From contig OU015569.1 of NCBI GenBank assembly GCA_907165135.1, forward strand, positions 10,664,001 to 10,728,000: 64,000 bases of DNA. The letters are read 5' to 3'. A program made the position numbers and the translations under genes. A model generated the notes under the pieces. It had not been told where the DNA came from. It saw nothing but the letters and a program-made list of their open reading frames with translations, and did not search any database. Below, piece by piece: positions 50,951-63,697 of the stretch; position 1 is the stretch's first letter, and each line of letters opens with the position of its first letter. This stretch comes from Oikopleura dioica (lineage: Eukaryota; Animalia; Chordata).

Positions 50951-53900
50951 ATGATCTTGTTTTTCATTTTATATTGCGGCTCGGGCGCTGCCGCAGATGA
51001 TAATCCAAAAATATTGAGCAGAGATGGAAGGTATGATCTCGTCATCGTTTAATATTTGATCATACTTTTTGAAATCATCGATACTTACTAGTAGGTCAGT
51101 AACAGCTAGTAACTAATCCTTCAGTTTACAATTTCTTGCTGGCACGGGGAAAAATATTTCATTTTCTGCTGGTGAGGGAGCCTCAGTTTGGGTTGGCGAA
51201 GAAGACATTATCTCCGCTCTTGACGATTTTCGTCGAGTTGAGCAAAGCGTGAACTCCTTGAAACAGAAGCTAGAAACTGATAATTGCGGCAACAACCCCT
51301 GCTACAATGGAGCTGCGTGTGTCTCTGTCTATGAAGGCTACTACTGCGATTGTCCAAGTTACTACACCGGGAGAACATGCAGAGAAGATTATAACGAATG
51401 TGCGGATTCTGTTATGGCTGAAAAACTCTGTCTGAACGGTGGCACGTGCGAAAACCAAACTCCTGGTTATTCCTGCGCATGCACAGCAGAATACGACGGC
51501 AGTCAATGCGAACGCGCCTTCGACGATTGTGCCGATGATTTGACGAAGTGTGACAAGGGAATTTGCGCGGATGGAATAAGAAGCCAGGCGGATGTTGCCA
51601 ATTTCACATGTATCTGCAACGCGGGCTGGCAAAAGACTGACGACGGCATTTGCTCGGCAGATATCAATGAATGTTTGAGCTCACCATGCTCTGTTGGTGT
51701 GCAGTGCTACAACACACCAGGCAGCTTCTTTTGCGGCCCCTGTCCTCACGGATATCAAGGTAAGTTTGAATATTTTTGATGTTTATTCGCACTTTTTTGC
51801 ACAGAATTTAATAAGGGCGTTGTAAATTCGAACTGTGTTCAAGTTCCAGTAATCGTACTTGAGATCGTCGCACATGCGGCAATACTTAGTCTGGCTAGCA
51901 AGAGCACAAGAAAAGAGCAAAATCAAGACGATTGCTTTTTGAATCGTAACCTTCATCAGAAAGGGAAAAAACTCAGATAGCCATCCTCCGATCAAGCAAC
52001 TGTATTTGAAAAGAATACCAGTGCATGATATTATGGCGATTCCAAGAGCCTCTTATGATACACTGACAAAATCTATAATTTATTCTTATTTACGTAACAA
52101 AAATCGATCATCATCTTATCTTCAGGCAATGGCTTGCGATGTGATGATCTGAACGAATGCCTTACCAACAATGGTGGATGTTCTACGTCTCCACTTGTCC
52201 AATGTATCAATACAGTCGGTTCCTTTTCTTGCGGTCCTTGTCCACCTGGTTATACTGGCGATGGCTTCACTTGTGATCCGACGTCTCCTTGTATGGTCCA
52301 AAATGGCGGCTGCTACCCCGACGCGACCTGTACGCCCGCTCCTGAACTCGGGCTCAACGGAGTCACTTGCGACTGTCCACCCGGGTACTACGGTAATGGT
52401 TTCGGACCAGAGGGCTGTCAGCCTTTGCCACCCTGCGCAGAGACTTGTCAAAATGGTCTTTGTTTCATGAACGAAGTGTGTGTCTGTTTCGAAGGATGGA
52501 CGGGTCTATCCTGCGATGTAAATATCAATGATCAAATTTGCGAGTCTAGACCCTGTGCTAATGGAGGTCAATGTAGATCCAGTGAGCTTGAATGGTGGTG
52601 CGAATGCCCTGCTGGATGGGTCGGTGAAACTTGCGAGGGACAAGCAAACGAATGTGGCGGAACATACACTGTCAACTCTGGCAACATTGGATATCCCCTC
52701 TCTTCTGGCAATTATCCACACAATGCTGAATGCCTCTGGACTATCCAAGTCAACAGAGGAGTAGGAGTGCATTTCCACTTTGATCAATTCTCTCTTGAAG
52801 GGCCTTACCCCTCGTGTCCTTTTGACGGACTTAGAATTTATGACGGACCAAGTGTCGAGTACGGACAGCTTCTTGGAGTTTGGTGCGGAGATAATGCCCC
52901 TGTGGATGTATTTTCTTGCTCGAACTACGCCTTGCTAGATTTTTACTCTGATTCATCTGTGAACGCTGGAGGCTTCCGAGTTCTTTTTGAGCAATATGAT
53001 CTAACCGGTGAGGATTGCGGTTGCGGTGGCGCATTCATCGACGTCGAAAGTGGTACCTTATCATCACCAAACTATCCTTTGGGTTATCCGACCATGGCGG
53101 AATGTTTCTGGACAATTTCTGTTCAACCTGGGTTTGTGTTGAGCCTTGCTTTTGATGCCGTGCAGCTGGAAGTAACGACAAATTGTATGAACGATTGGGT
53201 GGAAATTCGCGATGGCCTGTTGCCATACGATCCTGTTTTGGCGAAAGTCTGCAGTTACGATCAAGTCCCATCCAATTTGATAACTTCTGGTCCAGCAGCA
53301 CATGTGCATTTCCATTCCGACGATAATCAAGCTGAAGATGAGCAGGGATTTGCAATGTATTGGACAAGAATAAGTGATCCTGACAACTGTGGTGGTGTGC
53401 TTACCGATGGCGCAGGTAGTATTATGTCTCCGGGATATCCACAAACCTATGGAGTGGGCCACACTTGCTATTGGACTATTGTTGGAGTTCCAGGTGATCA
53501 GATGGCACTTCAGTTCACAGATATCGATATTGAAAACAGCGCGAATTGCCAATTTGATTACGTTGAGATCTTTGATGGGCCAGCTGAAGACTCGCCTACT
53601 TTAGGAAGATTCTGCGGATTGACTATTCCAAGCGAGCTTGTCACATCTCAATATCAAATGTTTGTCGCTTTTGTCACCGACGACAGTATTCATGGCCGTG
53701 GATTCTCTGCCGATTACTACACAAAATGTGGCGGTACTTATACTCAGAACAACACTTATATCAGCAGCCCTGGTTTCCCGGGAGTTTACGATCACGAAGT
53801 CGACTGCATTTATAATATCATTGCTCCAGAGGATTTCGTTATTACTCTGACATTCAATTATTTTGACGTGGAAGGCATCGATAATGGCGGTAATAACATT

Positions 53901-56900
53901 TGCTTCTTCGATTGGGTGGAAGTTAGAGATGGAAATACGGCGACATCGCCAGTTCTCGGCCGCTTTTGCGGTCCTCAAACACCGGAACCACTTCAATCAA
54001 CCGGGCAGTACATGTACATTAATTTCAAAACCGATGCTTCTCTCAGCGGTGATGGCTGGCAAGCAGTTGCGACCTTTGACGATCTAGGGACTGGTGGTTG
54101 TGGCGGTGTTTTCACAGCTGAAACTGGTCAAATCTCCTCTCCTGGGCATCCGAATCCCTATCCTCATGGTGCCAACTGCACGTGGTATATAAACGCGCCT
54201 TCTGGAGACGTCGTTCAGCTAGAGTTCAACAGTTTCTCATTGGAAGCTGCAACTGACTGCCGATGGGACTATGTGGCTGTTCATGACGGCATGCATCCGA
54301 CAGACGATAACGAGATTGCCAAGTATTGTGGCAATGACATCCCTTCGCGACAATACTCGACTCAAAATCACATGGTCGTCAGATTCGTCAGTGACAATTC
54401 AATCCAGGGTTCGGTATTTTGAATTCGCAAAATTATTCGTTTTTCATTTGAATTTCTATTTATTCGTTTACGAATATTCTCTAATGAGCGAATATGCAAA
54501 ACGAATGAAAACGAATTCTCTCGGCGAATTTTTCAGAAATTCAGCGAATTTCTCAAATATTCGCTTTGCCGCGCGCTCTGATTGGTCGGGCTTTGACGTT
54601 GCGCAGCCTATAATTTTATTTTCACCGCCCAAATAACCTTATAGCTCGCGGGCGCCACCCTTTTCTCGCCCGCGGCCCTGGAGTTCAGCCAATCCAGGGC
54701 TGTACGCTCAATTTCGAGCGAATATTCGCCCGAATAGGCGATTCGCGAACAATCGCTCATTCGCTTAAGAAAAGAGCATATTCGCTGCGTGTATTGGCGA
54801 ATTTTTCGACGAATTCAAAATACCGAACCCTGATTCAATCGCCAGCATCGGCTTTCAGGCTACATACACACTTCTGAACGCTACTCAGCAATGTGGAGGA
54901 ACTATTGACTCTCCATCAGGCGAGCTAGTTACTCCTGGATTTATCTCAGAGAGCAATTATCCGACTTCACGAGATTGTACCTGGCTGATTAATGCTCCAG
55001 CGCAGCAGCAGATTTATGCCCAGTTCAATTATTTCCAGCTCGAAGGTGGTGCAAATTGTCCTTACGATTACGTTGAGCTGCGAAACGGCGAGTACGAGGA
55101 TTCATCACTTATTGGCAGATTCTGCGGCTCTGTCTATCCACCTAATATCACCACGACTCACAACCATCTCCGAGTCCATTTTTACTCCGATTCGTCGGTC
55201 ACTTATCGCGGTTTCCGCATGGCATACGATGCTACAATCGACGGTTGCGGCGGAGACATCGTCGCTTCTATTGGAGATCTTCACTCTCCAAACTATCCAT
55301 TTGCATACAACCACGCCGCCGACTGCTTGTATCATATCACAACTTCTGCCGGAGCAAGAATCAATTTCAATTTCATCGATTTCGATTTAGAAGCAGCAAG
55401 CTGCAGATACGATTGGGTCCAGATCTTTGACGGCCCTACGCAGGCGTACAATCCGCTCAGGAAACGTGCTCAATTTATTGAAAAACATAAATTTCTATTT
55501 ATATTCGAAACATTATTTAAACTCAGCTGCCATTATTCGTGGGTCTATTAAGAAAATAATTATTGTAATTGATAAATTTATTATCACCAAATTACGTTTA
55601 AAATTTATTTTGCAAACATAAATTAATTCTTCGATTATAATTCATAATGAAGTAAGTTTGTTATGAACATGTCTCCAAGCGATCGTCTTTGTGGAACTGG
55701 ACTACCGGATCAACTCATGTCAACTCAAAATCAAGCAACTGTAGAATTCCGAACAGATGCCAGCGTCTCTGGACGAGGTTGGCGGCTTCACTTCGATACG
55801 ACTAACAACAATACCATTGGATGGCCGTTTAATGGTTACATCGAGTCGCCAAACTATCCCTTTGACTATCCAGATAATACAACATACGAGTGGAGAATCT
55901 ACGCGCCAGTTGGAGCCACAATCACGTTATATTTCAACGCGTTCTCTATTCACAACATCGCAACAATCGGCTACTGCTCTGGAGACAGATTGGAGGTCTA
56001 CGAAGGAGATCAGCGAGATAATGACAGCAGAATAGCAATTCTTTGCGGCGCACAACAGCCACAAGCAATCACTTCTACTGGCCAGTCACTTCTTTTACGA
56101 TTTAAGTCCAACGAGCTTTATTCATCAAGCGGATTTAGAATCAATTACGTTATCGACGCTTGCACCGAGGAGCGATCGGCAGTAAACGGACCAGGAACCA
56201 TTCAAATCAGTAAAAATGAGCCATCGCAATGCTACTACAGGATTTCTTCTGAACCAGGCACCAAGATTCAATTGCGTCTCACAGCCATGCAGGTCGCTAA
56301 TACTGCTTGTGAAGCGTCTAGCCTCCGTGTCTACAATGGCGATTTGCCTGTTAGTGACTTTCAGCTCTTAGAAATCTGTGGAAACCCAAGTCTGCCGAAA
56401 CAAACTCAGAGTACTGGATCTGAAATGATTGTCGTATTTACGACAGATTCTGGAAGTAACTCTATGAGTGCTGTTTATCAATCTCTTGCTGGTGGATGCG
56501 GTGCGCATTACATCAAAGAAGAGGGAACTTTCACAAGTCCTAACTATCCAAATACTTACCCGCACAATTCTGACTGTGAATGGCTGATCGATACATCAGA
56601 AGGAAACACTGTCAATCTCTACTTTACCGATTTCCATCTCGAAGGCTCTGGCTCTTTCTGCTACTTTGATTACGTTCGAGTTTATGATGGTGCAAACAAT
56701 ACTGCTCCTCTGTTGGGAACATACTGTGGTAACTACAGTCCCGAACCAGTTCGAGGAACGAGCAATGAAATGTTTGTTCATTTCCAATCCGACTCAAGCA
56801 TCAGCTACGGAGGATTTTCTGCTTCTTTCAACACAGAAACTTGTGGCGAAATCGTACAAGCTGATGAAGGGGCTGGCTCCATTTCATCAAGCAATTATCC

Positions 56901-59900
56901 CGACTTCTACGACTTCAATACTGAGTGCAGATGGACCATCAAAACTGTATCAACGGAAAAAATCCTGCTTGTATTTAGCCATCTGGATATCTGGGTAGAC
57001 ACATATACAGGCAATACGGACACGTGCCAGAGCGCTGATTATATACAAATTTATGAAGGGCGAGAACCAGACAGCACAACACCTAAGTATTGTGGTACCA
57101 GGATTCCTCCTCGATTCGAGTCTGCAGGCAACACAGTCCGTGTCTATCTCAATGCGAAGACCTCCCCGAACGGCCAACAGCGGCATGGTTTTTATGCTAC
57201 ATACAGTACTGCTGTTGATACTTGCGGCGGCGAGTTCTGGGCAGAAAGTGGAGCCTTTACCTCCCCGGGATACAGTAGTGGGGCTTATCCAGTTGGAACA
57301 ACATGCGAGTGGTTATTGACATCATCTCCTGGTAATTGGGTGGCCATCAATTTTGATGATTTTGATCTGCAAGCACCCTCGATATCCGGAACTTGCTACG
57401 ACTACGTCGAGCTCCGTGAAGACAGCTCAACTGGAAAACTCATCAATAAGTTTTGTGGCAGCAACCTTCCGGCTAATGTGACAACTTACTCGTCACACGT
57501 GATCTATGTGAAATTCTACAGTAACACCGCTACTGTTGGCCGCGGATTCTCCGCTTCTTGGTCTCACAGCTACGGTGGCTCCCTTGTCGGCTCAGGAACT
57601 GGACAAATTGCTAGCCCTCTTTATCCGCACTCGTATCCAGTCAATCTCGATGTGACTTGGACACTGTATGTCCGCTACAATCATATTATTCAATATGAGT
57701 GGCTTGCGTTTGCTACAGAAGCAGGAAGTGGAACTTGTGTGAATGATTACGTCATTCTTTATGATGGCCCAGATCGTTCAGCGAGCCAAATAGGACGATA
57801 CTGTGGACAAGAAATTCCCGAAAATGGCGTTACAGAGACGGACACTCTTACAATTTACTTCAAGAGTGATGCTTACTTTACTGATAGTGGATGGTGGATC
57901 AACTGGACCGACGCTGCGACAGGACACATTCCTGATGATGCTGATCCACCAGAGCTAGAACCTAATACTTGTGGAAACGACTATGTAATTGCTCCTGACC
58001 ATCCGATGCCATTGATCATGAATTACTCTCCTAATAAATACCCTGCTGGCATGGACTGCTATTGGAATTTGTATGCAACGAAAGGCTCGCGAATTCTTTT
58101 CACTGTTACTTATCTCGACTTGGAAGGCACAACAGGCAGTTCCTGTTATTTCGATTACATTCAGCTCTTCGATGGGCCGAGCAACAGCTATCCTGAGATT
58201 ACCAAGATTTGCGGTCGAACGACGAGTCTACTCCCGATCAAGGCTTCTTCAACTTCAGATATGATGACAGTTAGATTCCGCACCGATAGTTCGATAAACT
58301 ACCAAGGATTTAATGCGACATACGAGCGAATGTGTGGTGGAACGAAAAATGCTCGCTCTGGAACAATCATGTCACAAAACTATCCAAACGGCTATCCGGA
58401 TAACACGGACTGTGAGTGGCTTATCGAAGTTACTAATGGACTCACTGTTGACGTCAACTTCAACAGCGTCTTCAACATTGACTCTGGAAACTTGGCCTGC
58501 AACGAGTCTGCTGACTACTTAGAGCTGCGAAACGGAGCTGACGACGATGCTCCTCCTCTTTCGCCTTCAACACGAAATTCGGGCGACGCAGATGCGTATT
58601 TCTGCGGTAGTACCGCGCCAGTTGCAATGTCAAGCAGCGGTAACCAGATTAAAGTTCGTTTCATTTCCGACGCAAACCACACTTCTGATACAACAACATA
58701 TGCTGGTTTCCAAATGTCCTGGAATGCTGTCGGAACCGGTTGCGGCGGAGAATACGAAATCACAGACGAATCGCCAACAGGCTGGTTCACCACGCCCAAT
58801 TATCCGGACAACTACGACCTTAATGATTTCTGTATTTGGACAATCAGAGCCGGTTATGGAAAACAAATTCAACTCGATTTCAGTGGCGATTTCGATATTG
58901 AGGACAACTCAGCTTGCGTCTTTGACTATGTGAAAATCTACGATGATGAGTTTAATCACGACGAACCGACACTTGGAACATACTGTGGTACAAACCACCC
59001 AGATACTGTCAGATCGCTTGGAAACGTAATGGTTGTCAAGTTCCGCTCAGACGTCAGTATCACGGGACGAGGATTCAACGCGACATATTCTTCACCAAGA
59101 TGTGGTGGAATGTATACTGGCATGGGCGGAATAATTTCTTACGATGACTACCCTGATCCTTACCCTTCGGACGCGTTCGACTGCGAGTACGTTCTTCGAG
59201 CGCCTCTCTACCACAATGTCCAGGCCAGTTTCTCAGGAGAATTTTCCGTTCCTGGCAGCATGTTTGCCCAGTGCAATGGCGGGGACTACGTTGAGTTCCG
59301 TGACTATCGAGACGCTGGGTTCTTCTACGTGAGAAATCCTGACTCAAACTTAGTTGTTACTATCAATTCGGCGGTTAATTCTGACAATGTAGAGGCAAAT
59401 ACACATCAAGGACTTTACTCACAGCTCTGGCTCTGGGATTTCGACCACATTGTTTCAGTTTACGATAACACGAAAGTTCTAGCTGCTGATGGCGCCAACC
59501 CTGATGCAAATACAAACGTCCACGTTGAGTCATTCACAGGAGCAGATTATCAACGATGGGAAAGAACAAGCGATGGAAAACTGCTGAACAAAAACTCCAC
59601 CAATCTTGTTCTGACCATTCTCGGCAGTGGTAATGCAGGTTCGACCTTGGGACTGAGAGCAAATGCCTCAAACAGCGTCAATCAAGTATGGGAATTCGAA
59701 CACACTTACATCGGTAGAAGACTGGGCATTTTCTGTGGAAACAACATTCCAGCTGCGACGATTTCCTCTGCCGAGCGGGCGATGATTGTTCGACATCACT
59801 CTGAAAACGGGAACTCCGGTCGCTGGCAAGTCACTTGGGAAGCTTCGGAGGATATCTGCGGCGGGCCAACAACCGGCAGCAGTGGTATTATTGCCTCTCC

Positions 59901-62900
59901 AAATTTCCCGAATCAGCCGGATTCAAATCGTGGCTGTACGTGGATGATAACTGTCAACAGTGATCGCTCCGTGAAACTGCAGTTTATGGACGTTAATCTT
60001 GGAATTATGTCCTGTTATTATGATTATGTCAAGGTTTACAACGGTATTCGGGATCAATCGCCTCTTTTCTGGGATGGAACTATCTGTCAAAATCGTCTTC
60101 CTACTCACCCGTTCATATCTACTGGAAATACAATGAAAGTCGAGTTCGAAGCCAGTGGCTTTGGCTATAACGCTGGCTTCCGCGCTAACTATACGTCTGA
60201 CGAGCCTCGTTTCTGCGGAGGAGAGCTCAATATCGCCAACACTACAGATATCGGCTACATTGTTAACCCCGGCTATCCGGATGAATATCCCAACAATACC
60301 GAGTGCGAATGGTTGATCAGCACAGCCGCGAGAGCAAATCAAACCATTTACTTCGAATTTATTGAGCTCGATCTGGAGGACCACGCGACATGCGAGTACG
60401 ATAGAATTGAGTTCAGTGCTCCTTTAATTGACTCTCTTGCTGTTTACAATACCGTCTGCGGGCGTCGCCGACCTCTACCGTATTTCGCTCTGCCGACAAC
60501 CTCCGTCGACGTGGTTTTCCAATCAGATGATTTAGGCCACGGTACATTCAACATGTCCTACGGTATCAAGCCTTGCGGTGGTTATATTTCTGGATCTACT
60601 CAAGGAACTATTTGGTCGCCCAACTATCCCGACACATACAACCATGACGATTACTGCGTGTGGCTTATCGAAGCAGAGCCAGGTCATTCCATTTCCGTTC
60701 AATTCGATCTTAACTCATTTGATGTCGAGCAAGGCGGCAGCGATTGTCGCTTTGATGCCGTGTCTCTCTACAACGGTCCCAGCATCAAGTCACCAGAGAT
60801 TGGTCGCTACTGCAACAACACCATGCCTCCATCAACAGCTGTTCATACAAGCTCCAACTATCTAACGATTCTATTTACGTCAGACTTTTCAATCTCTCAC
60901 GGCGGCTTCGTCATCAACTGGGAAACAGACAACTCAGGCTGTGGAAACCAATTGATTCATAGCGAATATGGCTCACTTCAAAGTCCGAACTATCCAAACA
61001 CCTATCCTGCTAACTCGAACTGCTTCTGGACGATCTTCACCAATCCATCAGACCATGTTAAATTTACCTTCACGACATTCGACCTCGAAGGAAGTATGCC
61101 ATCTTGCTCCTGGGACTATGTCACTTTCCACAGCGGTGACTCTCTCGATGCACCAATGATAGGAGGACGTATTTGCGGTAGTGCAACGCCCGAACCCATT
61201 GAATCTTCACAGGATAAACTGTTTATTCGATTTAGAACGGATGGCTCTGTACAGAAGAACGGCTTTGCTGGAAATTGGGAAACGGTATGCGGACAAACAA
61301 TCGAATCTACCGGAGAACCTGGCGAGTCGGGCATGATCCTGTCACCGAATTACCCAGTTGATTATCCCAACAATTATGACTGCGAATGGAAGCTTGTTGG
61401 TTCCGACACATCCGATTTCGTACGCGCTCATTTTGTTGCCTTTGATCTTGAAGGTGGCAGCTCCTGCCAATACGATTCCGTCAGCGTGTACAGAGGCGAT
61501 CAGAAGGTATCTTCTCAGCTTCTTGGAAAATACTGCGGTACCGAGATTCCTCCTTCGCAATCGGTTCATGGAACTATGCTCATCAATTTCGTCTCTGATT
61601 TTATCATCACCAGCACTGGTTTCCGAATCGACTACGACTTCGAGTCTTGTGGCGGCACAAGATCAGCTCCCAGTGGCGAGATCAACGGACACACGCCGAC
61701 TGACAACTGGAACGAGCACAGAAATCTCAACTGCACTTGGACGATTGAAGTCGATGAAGACAAAATCGTTGAGCTTCGTTTCACACTCTTCGACATCGAG
61801 TTCGATACAAATTGTAACAATGATTATATTGCGATTTACGACGGACCAAGTAAGGTCGGTTATCAGATGATCGGAAAGTACTGTGGAAGTGTTCCTCCTG
61901 CTTTTGTGAGAAGTACAAGCAGATATATGACTCTTGAATATGTCACTGATTTTTATGAAACAAAGGTAAATTCATAACTATCCTTCAGTTATTCCTCTAA
62001 ATAATTTTAAAAGGATGGTTTTATTGCTGAATGGCGACAAACGATCGGCCCCCTTTCTGGCTGTGGTGGAGAACTCACTACTAACACTGGTAGTTTCTCA
62101 AGTCCGGCCGAAAATCCAGGGGATAATTACGAAAATAATCTCAACTGCAACTGGAGAATCTCGGTTAGCGACAACAAAATCATTCAGCTGGAGTTCAGTG
62201 ACTTTGTTTTGGAAAACCATTCTTCTGGAGGCGGGTGCTACGATTACGTTGAAGTCATTGACGGACAACTACTCACAGATCACGTGATTTACAGACAATG
62301 TGGCAATCAGACAAATATCGGTGTTATAAGATCGTCAGCTAACTTCATGATTGTACGATTTAAAACTGACGCTTCAATAACAGGTGCGCGATTTTTGATG
62401 ATTTTAAATTGTAACAGTGTTTATTTCTAGCTGCCGGATTCAACGCTTCTTATACCGTTGCAGATCGTGACTGCGGTGCAACCTTCATTGCCAACTCTAC
62501 TCTTACCGGATTTGGCTACGATTTCACTGGAATAGCGGGTAACTCGCAGATCTACCGCTGCAGCTGGATCATCTCGGCCTCAAGTGACACTCGTTTTGTT
62601 GACATGAGGACCCTTTCTCTCGATGTTCCCGGCTCTAGCGATTCAAGATGTGCGGATGGATATGTCGAGTACCGCGATGTCGGACTTTCCTCCCAATATG
62701 GCCAAGTGCTGCGATACTGTAATGCCGATGGAGGCACTGTGCCACCCGAGTTCTTTTCGCTCTCCGAAACAATGTCCATCACTTTGAGAAACGCGAGGAA
62801 CCAAAATTCTTCCTTCACCGCTCAATTCTCAGATGCCGACTGCTCACGAACCTACACCGCAATGAACGGACGCATCTTTTCCGCCGGATGGCCTCACCAC

Positions 62901-63697
62901 TACGCGCAATATTTGAACTGCCAGATCAGGATTCAAGTGCCAGAAGGAAACAAGATTCAATTGTACTTCAACGAATTCGACGTCGAAGATGCTGAGGACT
63001 GCAATATGGACACGTGTGACCACCTAGATGTCTAGTAAGACTTTTTTAGTGCTCCAAAAGTAAACTCAACATTTCAGCAATTCCACGACTATCCAGTCTA
63101 ACAACTTCATCGGTCGCTACCACGGCAATCGCTTACCCTCTCCAATCTTCCCCAACACGAACAACGTTCTCCTCCACTTCGTCTCTGATCAGCTCGTTTC
63201 TGGACGCGGTTTCGATATTTCTTACGCGGCCAATATCCAGGGCTGCGGTGGAAACCTTACAGGCACTCATGGCAACGTCTATTTGACTGGCTATCCAACT
63301 GATCCGTATCCAGCGAACCAGGTCTGCATCTGGCACATTACAGTTCCGCAGAACAGACAGGTCACGATTCACTTTAGAAATATCAACGTCAGGTAGCGAC
63401 CAAATCGAATACTCGCGAAATATACATATTTCTTCCCAGGTACAACATCGAGAGCAACTCTTGCTACAATGACTACGTCGCCGCCTACGAAGGAATCACA
63501 GACACTGGCCCTTGGCTACGCGCTTACTGTGGGAGAGGAAGTGTCTCCGATGTTTCAGGTAATGATAAAAACTGAAAGCTGACAACTCCATGTTTCTAGC
63601 TCAATCAAATCAAATGACGCTGGTCTGGCGCGCCGGGGACTCATCGGACTCAGATCGAGCTGGCTTTACGGGTTGGTGGATCGAGTGGGAGTCTTAG
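50951..63697 (+). CDS. CUBN: Cubilin: signal peptide, N-terminal stalk, 8 EGF, 27 CUB, plus one inserted ricin-B domain
   Basis: MILFFILYCGSGAAADDNPKILSRDG|SLQFLAGTGKNISFSAGEGASVWVGEEDI resembles the cubilin N-terminus. I counted 8 EGF and 27 CUB domains, the vertebrate cubilin architecture. No TM helix; stop at 63695-63697. Confidence 0.93.
51783..51956 (-). CDS. Nested antisense secreted mini-protein (57 aa, CxxC...CxxxC) in a cubilin intron
   Basis: MKVTIQKAIVLILLFSCALASQTKYCRMCDDLKYDYWNLNTVRIYNALIKFCAKKCE*; pyrimidine-rich AG acceptor ~45 nt upstream; AATAAA overlaps the stop. Confidence 0.6.
   Translation of the reverse strand: MKVTIQKAIVLILLFSCALASQTKYCRMCDDLKYDYWNLNTVRIYNALIKFCAKKCE
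54405..54832. mobile_element. hAT-type MITE, 428 bp, inserted into cubilin coding sequence (CUB5)
   Basis: Perfect 23-bp TIR cagggttcggtattttgaattcg/cgaattcaaaataccgaaccctg; perfect 8-bp TSD ATTCAATC at 54397-54404 and 54833-54840. Confidence 0.96.

Follow-up and report, generated by a model that had tools for sequence, protein, structure and literature searches.

Transposon-derived introns, or introners, are described from Micromonas, Aureococcus and other eukaryotes (Huff et al. 2016), and larvaceans are reported to have lost the U12 spliceosome and to process non-GT/AG introns with their U2 spliceosome (Henriet et al. 2019). In Fritillaria borealis GT/AG introns are fewer than 10%, and most non-canonical introns are of the AG-A(N) kind and are handled by duplicated U2AF paralogues; authors working on this species discuss whether its non-canonical introns may stem from introner transposons with weak sites. 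A further point of comparison is provided by the exon polymorphisms of hAT miniature inverted-repeat transposable elements (MITEs) of the Ac/Ds type. Here we describe an insertion in a 64,000-nucleotide stretch of the Oikopleura dioica reference OKI2018_I69 (GenBank assembly GCA_907165135.1, contig OU015569.1, positions 10,664,001 to 10,728,000 of the forward strand, or C2:10664001-10728000; this whole stretch is the window, and positions are those of the window unless they carry a prefix such as C1). A large exon in the coding sequence of a cubilin orthologue holds a 428-bp non-autonomous hAT MITE, which introduces a premature stop codon. It is probable, in our assessment, that the reference has captured an allele of recent origin that is disruptive or hypomorphic and probably still segregates.

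The structure of the insertion is that of a transposed element (Table 1). First, the sequence CAGGGTTCGGTATTTTGAATTCG at 54405-54427 is repeated as its reverse complement at 54810-54832 without a single mismatch, and these two element ends are its only matches in the whole window, where none is expected by chance; the inverted-repeat arms reach 35 nt at 86% complementarity. Second, an 8-bp target-site duplication flanks the element. Third, taking out 436 nt, namely the element and one copy of the duplication, leaves a single open frame that reads RFVSDNSI/ASIGFQATY across the junction. When the element is retained, five of its codons are read and the frame, which runs from 52098 to 54419 (774 codons with five CUB matches in Pfam), ends at the TGA at 54420-54422, after CUB5. 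A preliminary description of this DNA had reported both the CUB consensus restored by removal (FVSDNSI-ASIGFQATY) and this stop in the unspliced frame, and our analysis bears out both. At least 2,900 cubilin codons downstream of the insertion are intact, but a very recent insertion of any kind would leave them so, and their state does not tell the explanations apart.

The insert has likenesses to each of these systems. As with introners, a DNA transposon that has inverted ends and is flanked by a target-site duplication lies in a coding exon, and one of its ends carries donor-like GT and GG dinucleotides. Introner removal restores the frame, however, and introners have many copies in genes, whereas the cubilin MITE has neither splice-type ends for exact excision nor an acceptor of its own, its splices are predictions, and two of ten tested short copies of its family are in coding-like sequence. 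It shares with the Ac/Ds-type polymorphisms an 8-bp duplication biased to T at its second position and A at its seventh, the breaking of an open frame, and a short, non-coding form that probably arose by internal deletion from a longer element with a hAT C-terminal motif. It differs from them in its host, a tunicate whose genome is extremely compact and whose spliceosome is permissive, so that splicing rescue is likelier than in most animals, and in having a putative autonomous partner that is supported only by sub-threshold Pfam matches and a tblastx match.

Cubilins have N-terminal EGF repeats ahead of about 27 tandem CUB domains in some 3,600 aa, and the host gene is identified as a cubilin orthologue by this domain layout. 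Pfam places EGF and EGF_CA domains in 51117-52700, followed by 5, 2, 16, 1 and 2 CUB matches over successive open pieces. When the upstream exon piece was compared by HMMER with 1.84 billion representative proteins, only distant cubilins were matched, at no more than 42% identity over the CUB repeats; the best of them are full-length and 3,400-3,750 aa long, and no Oikopleura representative was among them. Word-index protein searches, for which the exon pieces flanking the site were used, gave relatives at 45-86% identity, including a cubilin named from Patella vulgata (45%). The segment 51237-63492 is collinear with a 3,658-aa cubilin, and the gene extends at least over this interval. Cubilin (CUBN) is a multi-ligand endocytic receptor that acts in nutrient uptake. 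The window gene has its order of EGF repeats and CUB domains, and full-length cubilins as best matches, but departs from it in carrying a ricin-type domain among the CUBs and in being one of two cubilin-like genes in the genome. The ricin-type beta-trefoil match (32 bits) lies at 59300-59700, corresponding to residues 1225-1347 of the open piece 55651-61974.

The ancestral state of the site is apparent from two contigs of a close relative. The first, P0153, from a JGI source, is 86% identical to the downstream exon piece in the word-index search, and the second, P0154, from ENA, is its cluster mate. Both start MVVRFVSDNSIASIGFQATY and are uninterrupted across the insertion site, their open frames starting a mere 11 codons upstream of it. 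Past ...AYNPL, P0153 reads RPRVQFKKKTHF, where the unspliced counterpart in the window is RKRAQFIEKHKF; it thus runs into the next intron and is unspliced DNA. P0154 reads ...AYNPLSDRLCGTG, with the GA-AG intron removed, and is therefore a transcript, which also confirms that intron. Since the genomic and the transcript contig read straight through with neither insertion nor intron, the site is ancestrally intron-free, and the ancestral intron that would have told against the preliminary description is absent from both. In a cubilin at 41-43% identity, likewise, SDSSV and GF are three residues apart. None of the matches of the word-index protein searches came from the Okinawan lineage, and a metagenome scan for the P0153 contig returned unrelated CUB proteins only. 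Exact look-ups of five open frames such as gene calling on the filled allele might yield had no match, but this included a 2,104-aa control and is uninformative.

The element belongs to a small family. Genome-wide searches, here and below, cover the OKI2018_I69 assembly (64,281,565 bases in 19 pieces), in which 13 elements have paired copies of the terminal repeat: 11 of about 428 bp, which are 93-100% identical, one of 5,740 bp and one of 2,255 bp. There are several indications of its class and age. First, the 8-bp flanks, read for 12 of the 13, differ from copy to copy and are perfect duplications in all but one, where three of the eight positions mismatch (L005). Second, position 2 of these duplications is T in 10 of 12 elements and position 7 is A in 7 of 12, which fits the hAT target consensus nTnnnnAn. 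Third, the ends of the MITE start CAGGGTTCGG, and the initial CAGGG is the same as in Ac. The insert is accordingly classed as a hAT MITE. Finally, the cubilin copy has two mismatches in 428 to its nearest sibling, in keeping with the earlier claim of a recent event. Six of the copies are no more than 1-5 differences apart, and the burst of the MITE is therefore very recent. Loci L016-L019 were considered as members and rejected, since they are 75% identical to an inner segment of the MITE, lack the terminal repeat and represent another family.

The 5,740-bp element (C1:6715805-6721544, minus strand; L029 501-6240) has the same perfect terminal repeats and the target-site duplication ATATATTC. 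Its two ends correspond to positions 1-188 and 179-428 of the MITE, with 99-99.6% identity, and the MITE therefore has the pattern of an internal-deletion derivative of it. The longer element contains several open frames on the same strand, in a multi-exon arrangement ending ...PGSSCDLEREFSQTTRDSMDPCRNRL..., and encodes a hAT C-terminal motif, ...PGSSCDLEREFS...RNRL.... Two adjacent frames give collinear Dimer_Tnp_hAT matches in Pfam of 12.6 and 14.8 bits, below the cut-off of 21.4, and tblastx matches it to other hAT loci of the genome at E = 1e-11; domain searches gave no match to a catalytic domain in this element. By its ends and motifs, it is the probable autonomous parent of the MITE. 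In the 2,255-bp element (C1:7672754-7675008, L030; duplication ATCCCCAC), MITE positions 72 and 71 are separated by about 1.8 kb of other sequence, so that this element represents a nested insertion or else another deletion derivative. A separate hAT family is also present at seven near-identical loci (C1:636914-737685, C4:380299-393363 and C5:13847453); its dimerisation-domain matches reach 39 bits, above threshold, with open frames of 177 aa, and it appears to have been recently amplified.

In the explanation that we propose, the non-autonomous MITE landed very recently, by cut-and-paste transposition, in the ancestrally uninterrupted cubilin exon, on the haplotype chosen for the reference of Okinawan O. 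dioica. By default, either a receptor truncated by about 22 CUB domains would be made or the mRNA would be lost to nonsense-mediated decay. The allele would be null or hypomorphic; most likely it still segregates, and the sequenced male may have been heterozygous for it. Some of the transcripts may be rescued by cryptic splicing that joins weak G-N donors in the left terminal repeat to host AGs lying 13-26 nt beyond the element, but such rescue would not give back the original protein. OKI2018_I69 comes from one male with about 3.6% heterozygosity, and its two haplotypes were merged into an unphased reference. The flanking exon has only its self match in the assembly, which holds no second haplotype copy, and is single-copy. 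A preference of HaploMerger2 for the longer allele was considered and set aside, as the text of the paper says that the allele of better quality is chosen. Even as a plainly disruptive allele the element would matter in practice: users of OKI2018_I69 should be aware that a private-looking insertion in the cubilin model at C2:10.715-10.727 Mb will truncate or distort gene predictions.

The alternative that survives best, and which we regard as possible but doubtful, is that the element is a nascent intron. A permissive U2 spliceosome would remove it from most transcripts, using the donor at GT54414, GG54407 or GG54413 and a host AG at 54845 or 54858, to give a full-length cubilin with a change of -5 to +1 residues in CUB5; such an allele would be nearly neutral and could become a fixed intron. 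Exact removal of the element is not available to splicing. None of the nine registers for excision of 436 nt has G-N...AG ends, these being AT..TG, TT..GA, TC..AT, CA..TT, AA..TC, AT..CA, TC..AA, CC..AT and CA..TC, and splicing therefore cannot restore the original protein. Non-canonical introns of O. dioica are of the G-N...AG kind. Although this species is of the same animal class as F. borealis and likewise has a U2 spliceosome that handles non-GT/AG introns, the exact-removal ends fit neither the AG-A(N) nor the G-N...AG pattern.

Inexact removal is a different matter, and 14 in-frame, stop-free G-N...AG pairs were enumerated across the element, with junction peptides computed for frame checking. 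All alter the protein, two keep IGFQATY (Table 1), and the acceptor tttcag/G at 54858 looks good. The preliminary description had listed two canonical frame-restoring splices, GT54414-AG54858 (445 nt) and GT54409-AG54769 (361 nt, with 25 added residues); both are found here, but the list had missed the further in-frame G-N...AG pairs and the absence of any usable register for exact excision. The spacing from SDxS to GF is four residues in 10 of the 11 motif-matching CUB domains of the protein itself, and every one of the in-frame options breaks this SDxS-4-GF spacing, in the most conserved strand of CUB5.

The predicted properties of the donors are also unfavorable. Against the 5′ end of U1 the candidates score -4.4 to -5.3 kcal/mol, compared with -10.6, -6.8 and about -6.4 kcal/mol for the three GT donors of the cubilin gene (for the last of these the calculation was one base out of register). 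The comparison is with the four homology-supported introns of this gene; a heuristic intron harvest at open-frame junctions, intended for splice-site matrices, was mostly noise and was dropped. In a 651-nt fold the candidate donor nucleotides have an unpaired probability of 0.00, buried as they are in the perfect 23-bp stem of the terminal repeats (-37.4 kcal/mol), and the whole-element fold has a z-score of -7.55. The resulting intron of 433-451 nt would be about nine times the median.

Several points nonetheless favor splicing and count against a simple disruptive allele. First, 11% of O. dioica introns are non-GT/AG (the median intron length is 49 nt), and this, together with the GA-AG intron of the cubilin gene, makes the O. 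dioica spliceosome a permissive one. Second, the working GA donor of that intron, which lies 600 nt downstream of the insertion and is spliced in the relative's transcript, scores -4.5 kcal/mol against U1, no better than the candidates. Third, U1 binding could precede formation of the hairpin, before the right arm is transcribed. Fourth, introns as long as 219 and 366 nt are already tolerated in the gene. Fifth, a review table enters Oikopleura under intron gain by transposon insertion; the table gives indirect evidence only, and to that extent the earlier statement that MITE-derived intron gain has been reported in Oikopleura agrees with this entry. Moreover, the allele frequency, the heterozygosity and the poor splicing of the filled allele are parts of the disruptive-allele reading that we infer. 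Taken together, the evidence of the sequence leans against an efficient intron. The preliminary interpretation thus stands as to an insertion in cubilin coding sequence, its recency and the truncated unspliced frame, and its choice between a new intron or exonisation and a loss-of-function allele tilts toward the latter.

The other members of the family count against an intron. The preliminary description had raised the question of how often this terminal-repeat family lands in exons, and an excision test of ten short copies places two in a coding-like frame, the cubilin copy (736 codons) and perhaps one other, with no enrichment in genes. For the remaining tested copies the spanning frames after excision are of at most 104 codons, and a location in existing introns is possible. 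The second copy (L007 1493-1936, C1:16781962-16782389) is in the opposite orientation, in a kinase-like frame (...HLALKPANIF..., ...KIGDFGSAHS.../...TPLYAAPG...) that enters the same QGSVF-stop as the cubilin copy; the Pkinase match is 14.5 bits, and the host may be a degenerate gene. The cubilin MITE lacks a terminal AG, and the family does not behave like an introner. It is in our view unlikely that the O. dioica U2 spliceosome, permissive as it is, routinely removes young hAT MITEs that land in exons by way of terminal-repeat G-N donors and the nearest host AG.

Exonisation is much less probable still. Splicing from GT54409 to the AG at 54769 would keep ASIGFQ and add 25 mostly element-derived residues to CUB5, and the junction is in frame and stop-free; the donor AGG/GTTCGG is, however, weak and base-paired, the acceptor cttaag has a poor pyrimidine tract, and the extra residues ahead of the last CUB strand break the conserved spacing. 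An assembly artefact or a somatic event, with the element not germline at this site, is the least credible explanation, for although the assembly derives from Nanopore reads with two haplotypes merged, the perfect 8-bp duplication of host sequence and complete, perfect ends are the signature of genuine hAT transposition, the other copies with flanks read have 8-bp flanks of their own that are perfect in all but one, the flanking exon is single-copy, and a somatic event would not dominate a 221x consensus.

Table 1. Features of the interrupted cubilin gene and its MITE, with window positions (a slash in a peptide marks the splice junction).
Feature	Position	Strand	Remarks
Cubilin orthologue, part within window	51117..63492	+	EGF repeats, about 27 CUB domains, nested ricin-type domain
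GT-AG intron, 366 nt	51760-52125		between EGF exons
Interrupted exon, upstream part	52126..54404	+	EGF repeats and CUB1-CUB5 without the last strand of CUB5
Target-site duplication, left copy, 8 bp	54397..54404	+	ATTCAATC; same letters as 54833-54840
Non-autonomous hAT element (MITE), 428 bp	54405..54832	+	no coding capacity; long-hairpin fold
Left terminal inverted repeat	54405..54427	+	perfect, 23 nt; holds candidate donors GG54407, GG54408, GT54409, GG54413, GT54414
Premature TGA if element retained	54420..54422	+	predicted product ends ...FVSDNSIQGSVF
Candidate acceptor AG, in element (cttaag)	54768..54769	+	pairs with GT54409
Right terminal inverted repeat	54810..54832	-	perfect, 23 nt
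Target-site duplication, right copy, 8 bp	54833..54840	+	ATTCAATC
Interrupted exon, downstream part	54841..55460	+	end of CUB5, CUB6, first part of CUB7
Candidate acceptor AG, host (gccag)	54844..54845	+	pairs with GG54407 or GG54413
Candidate acceptor AG, host (tttcag)	54857..54858	+	pairs with GT54414
Splice option, 445 nt	GT54414-AG54858		DNSIQGS/ATY; conserved GF lost
Splice option	GG54408-AG54858		DNSIQ/ATY
Splice option	GG54407-AG54845		DNSIHIGFQ; keeps IGFQATY, -1 residue
Splice option	GG54413-AG54845		DNSIQGSIGFQ; keeps IGFQATY, +1 residue
Splice option, 361 nt	GT54409-AG54769		exonises 25 residues before ASIGFQ
Non-canonical GA-AG intron, 219 nt, in CUB7	55461..55679	+	spliced in relative's transcript: NPL-S-DRLCG
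GT-AG intron, 48 nt	61966-62013
GT-AG intron, 48 nt	62384-62431

The significance of the locus depends on which explanation holds. If the allele is plainly disruptive, it would be an ordinary transposon insertion polymorphism, and the insertion would still show present-day activity of this hAT family, with its probable parent element. If splicing does remove the MITE, the locus would offer a dated, polymorphic birth of an intron from a DNA transposon in a chordate, with filled and empty alleles that can be compared, and were such splicing of MITEs routine, the Okinawan culture would be a living and genotypable system for transposon-driven intron gain in an animal.

The second cubilin-like gene is located at C1:6602757-6613157 on the minus strand (L045:1-4158, L044:3758-10000). 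Its 3,467 codons form one open frame that contains EGF repeats and matches CUB at least 21 times, giving two cubilin paralogues in O. dioica; the second gene may buffer loss of the interrupted one. Among the introns of the window gene, those at 51760-52125 and 55461-55679 were examined as repeats, and a genome search found each to be unique. The former is unusually long and contains an open frame of 70 codons on the opposite strand, at 51783-51995.

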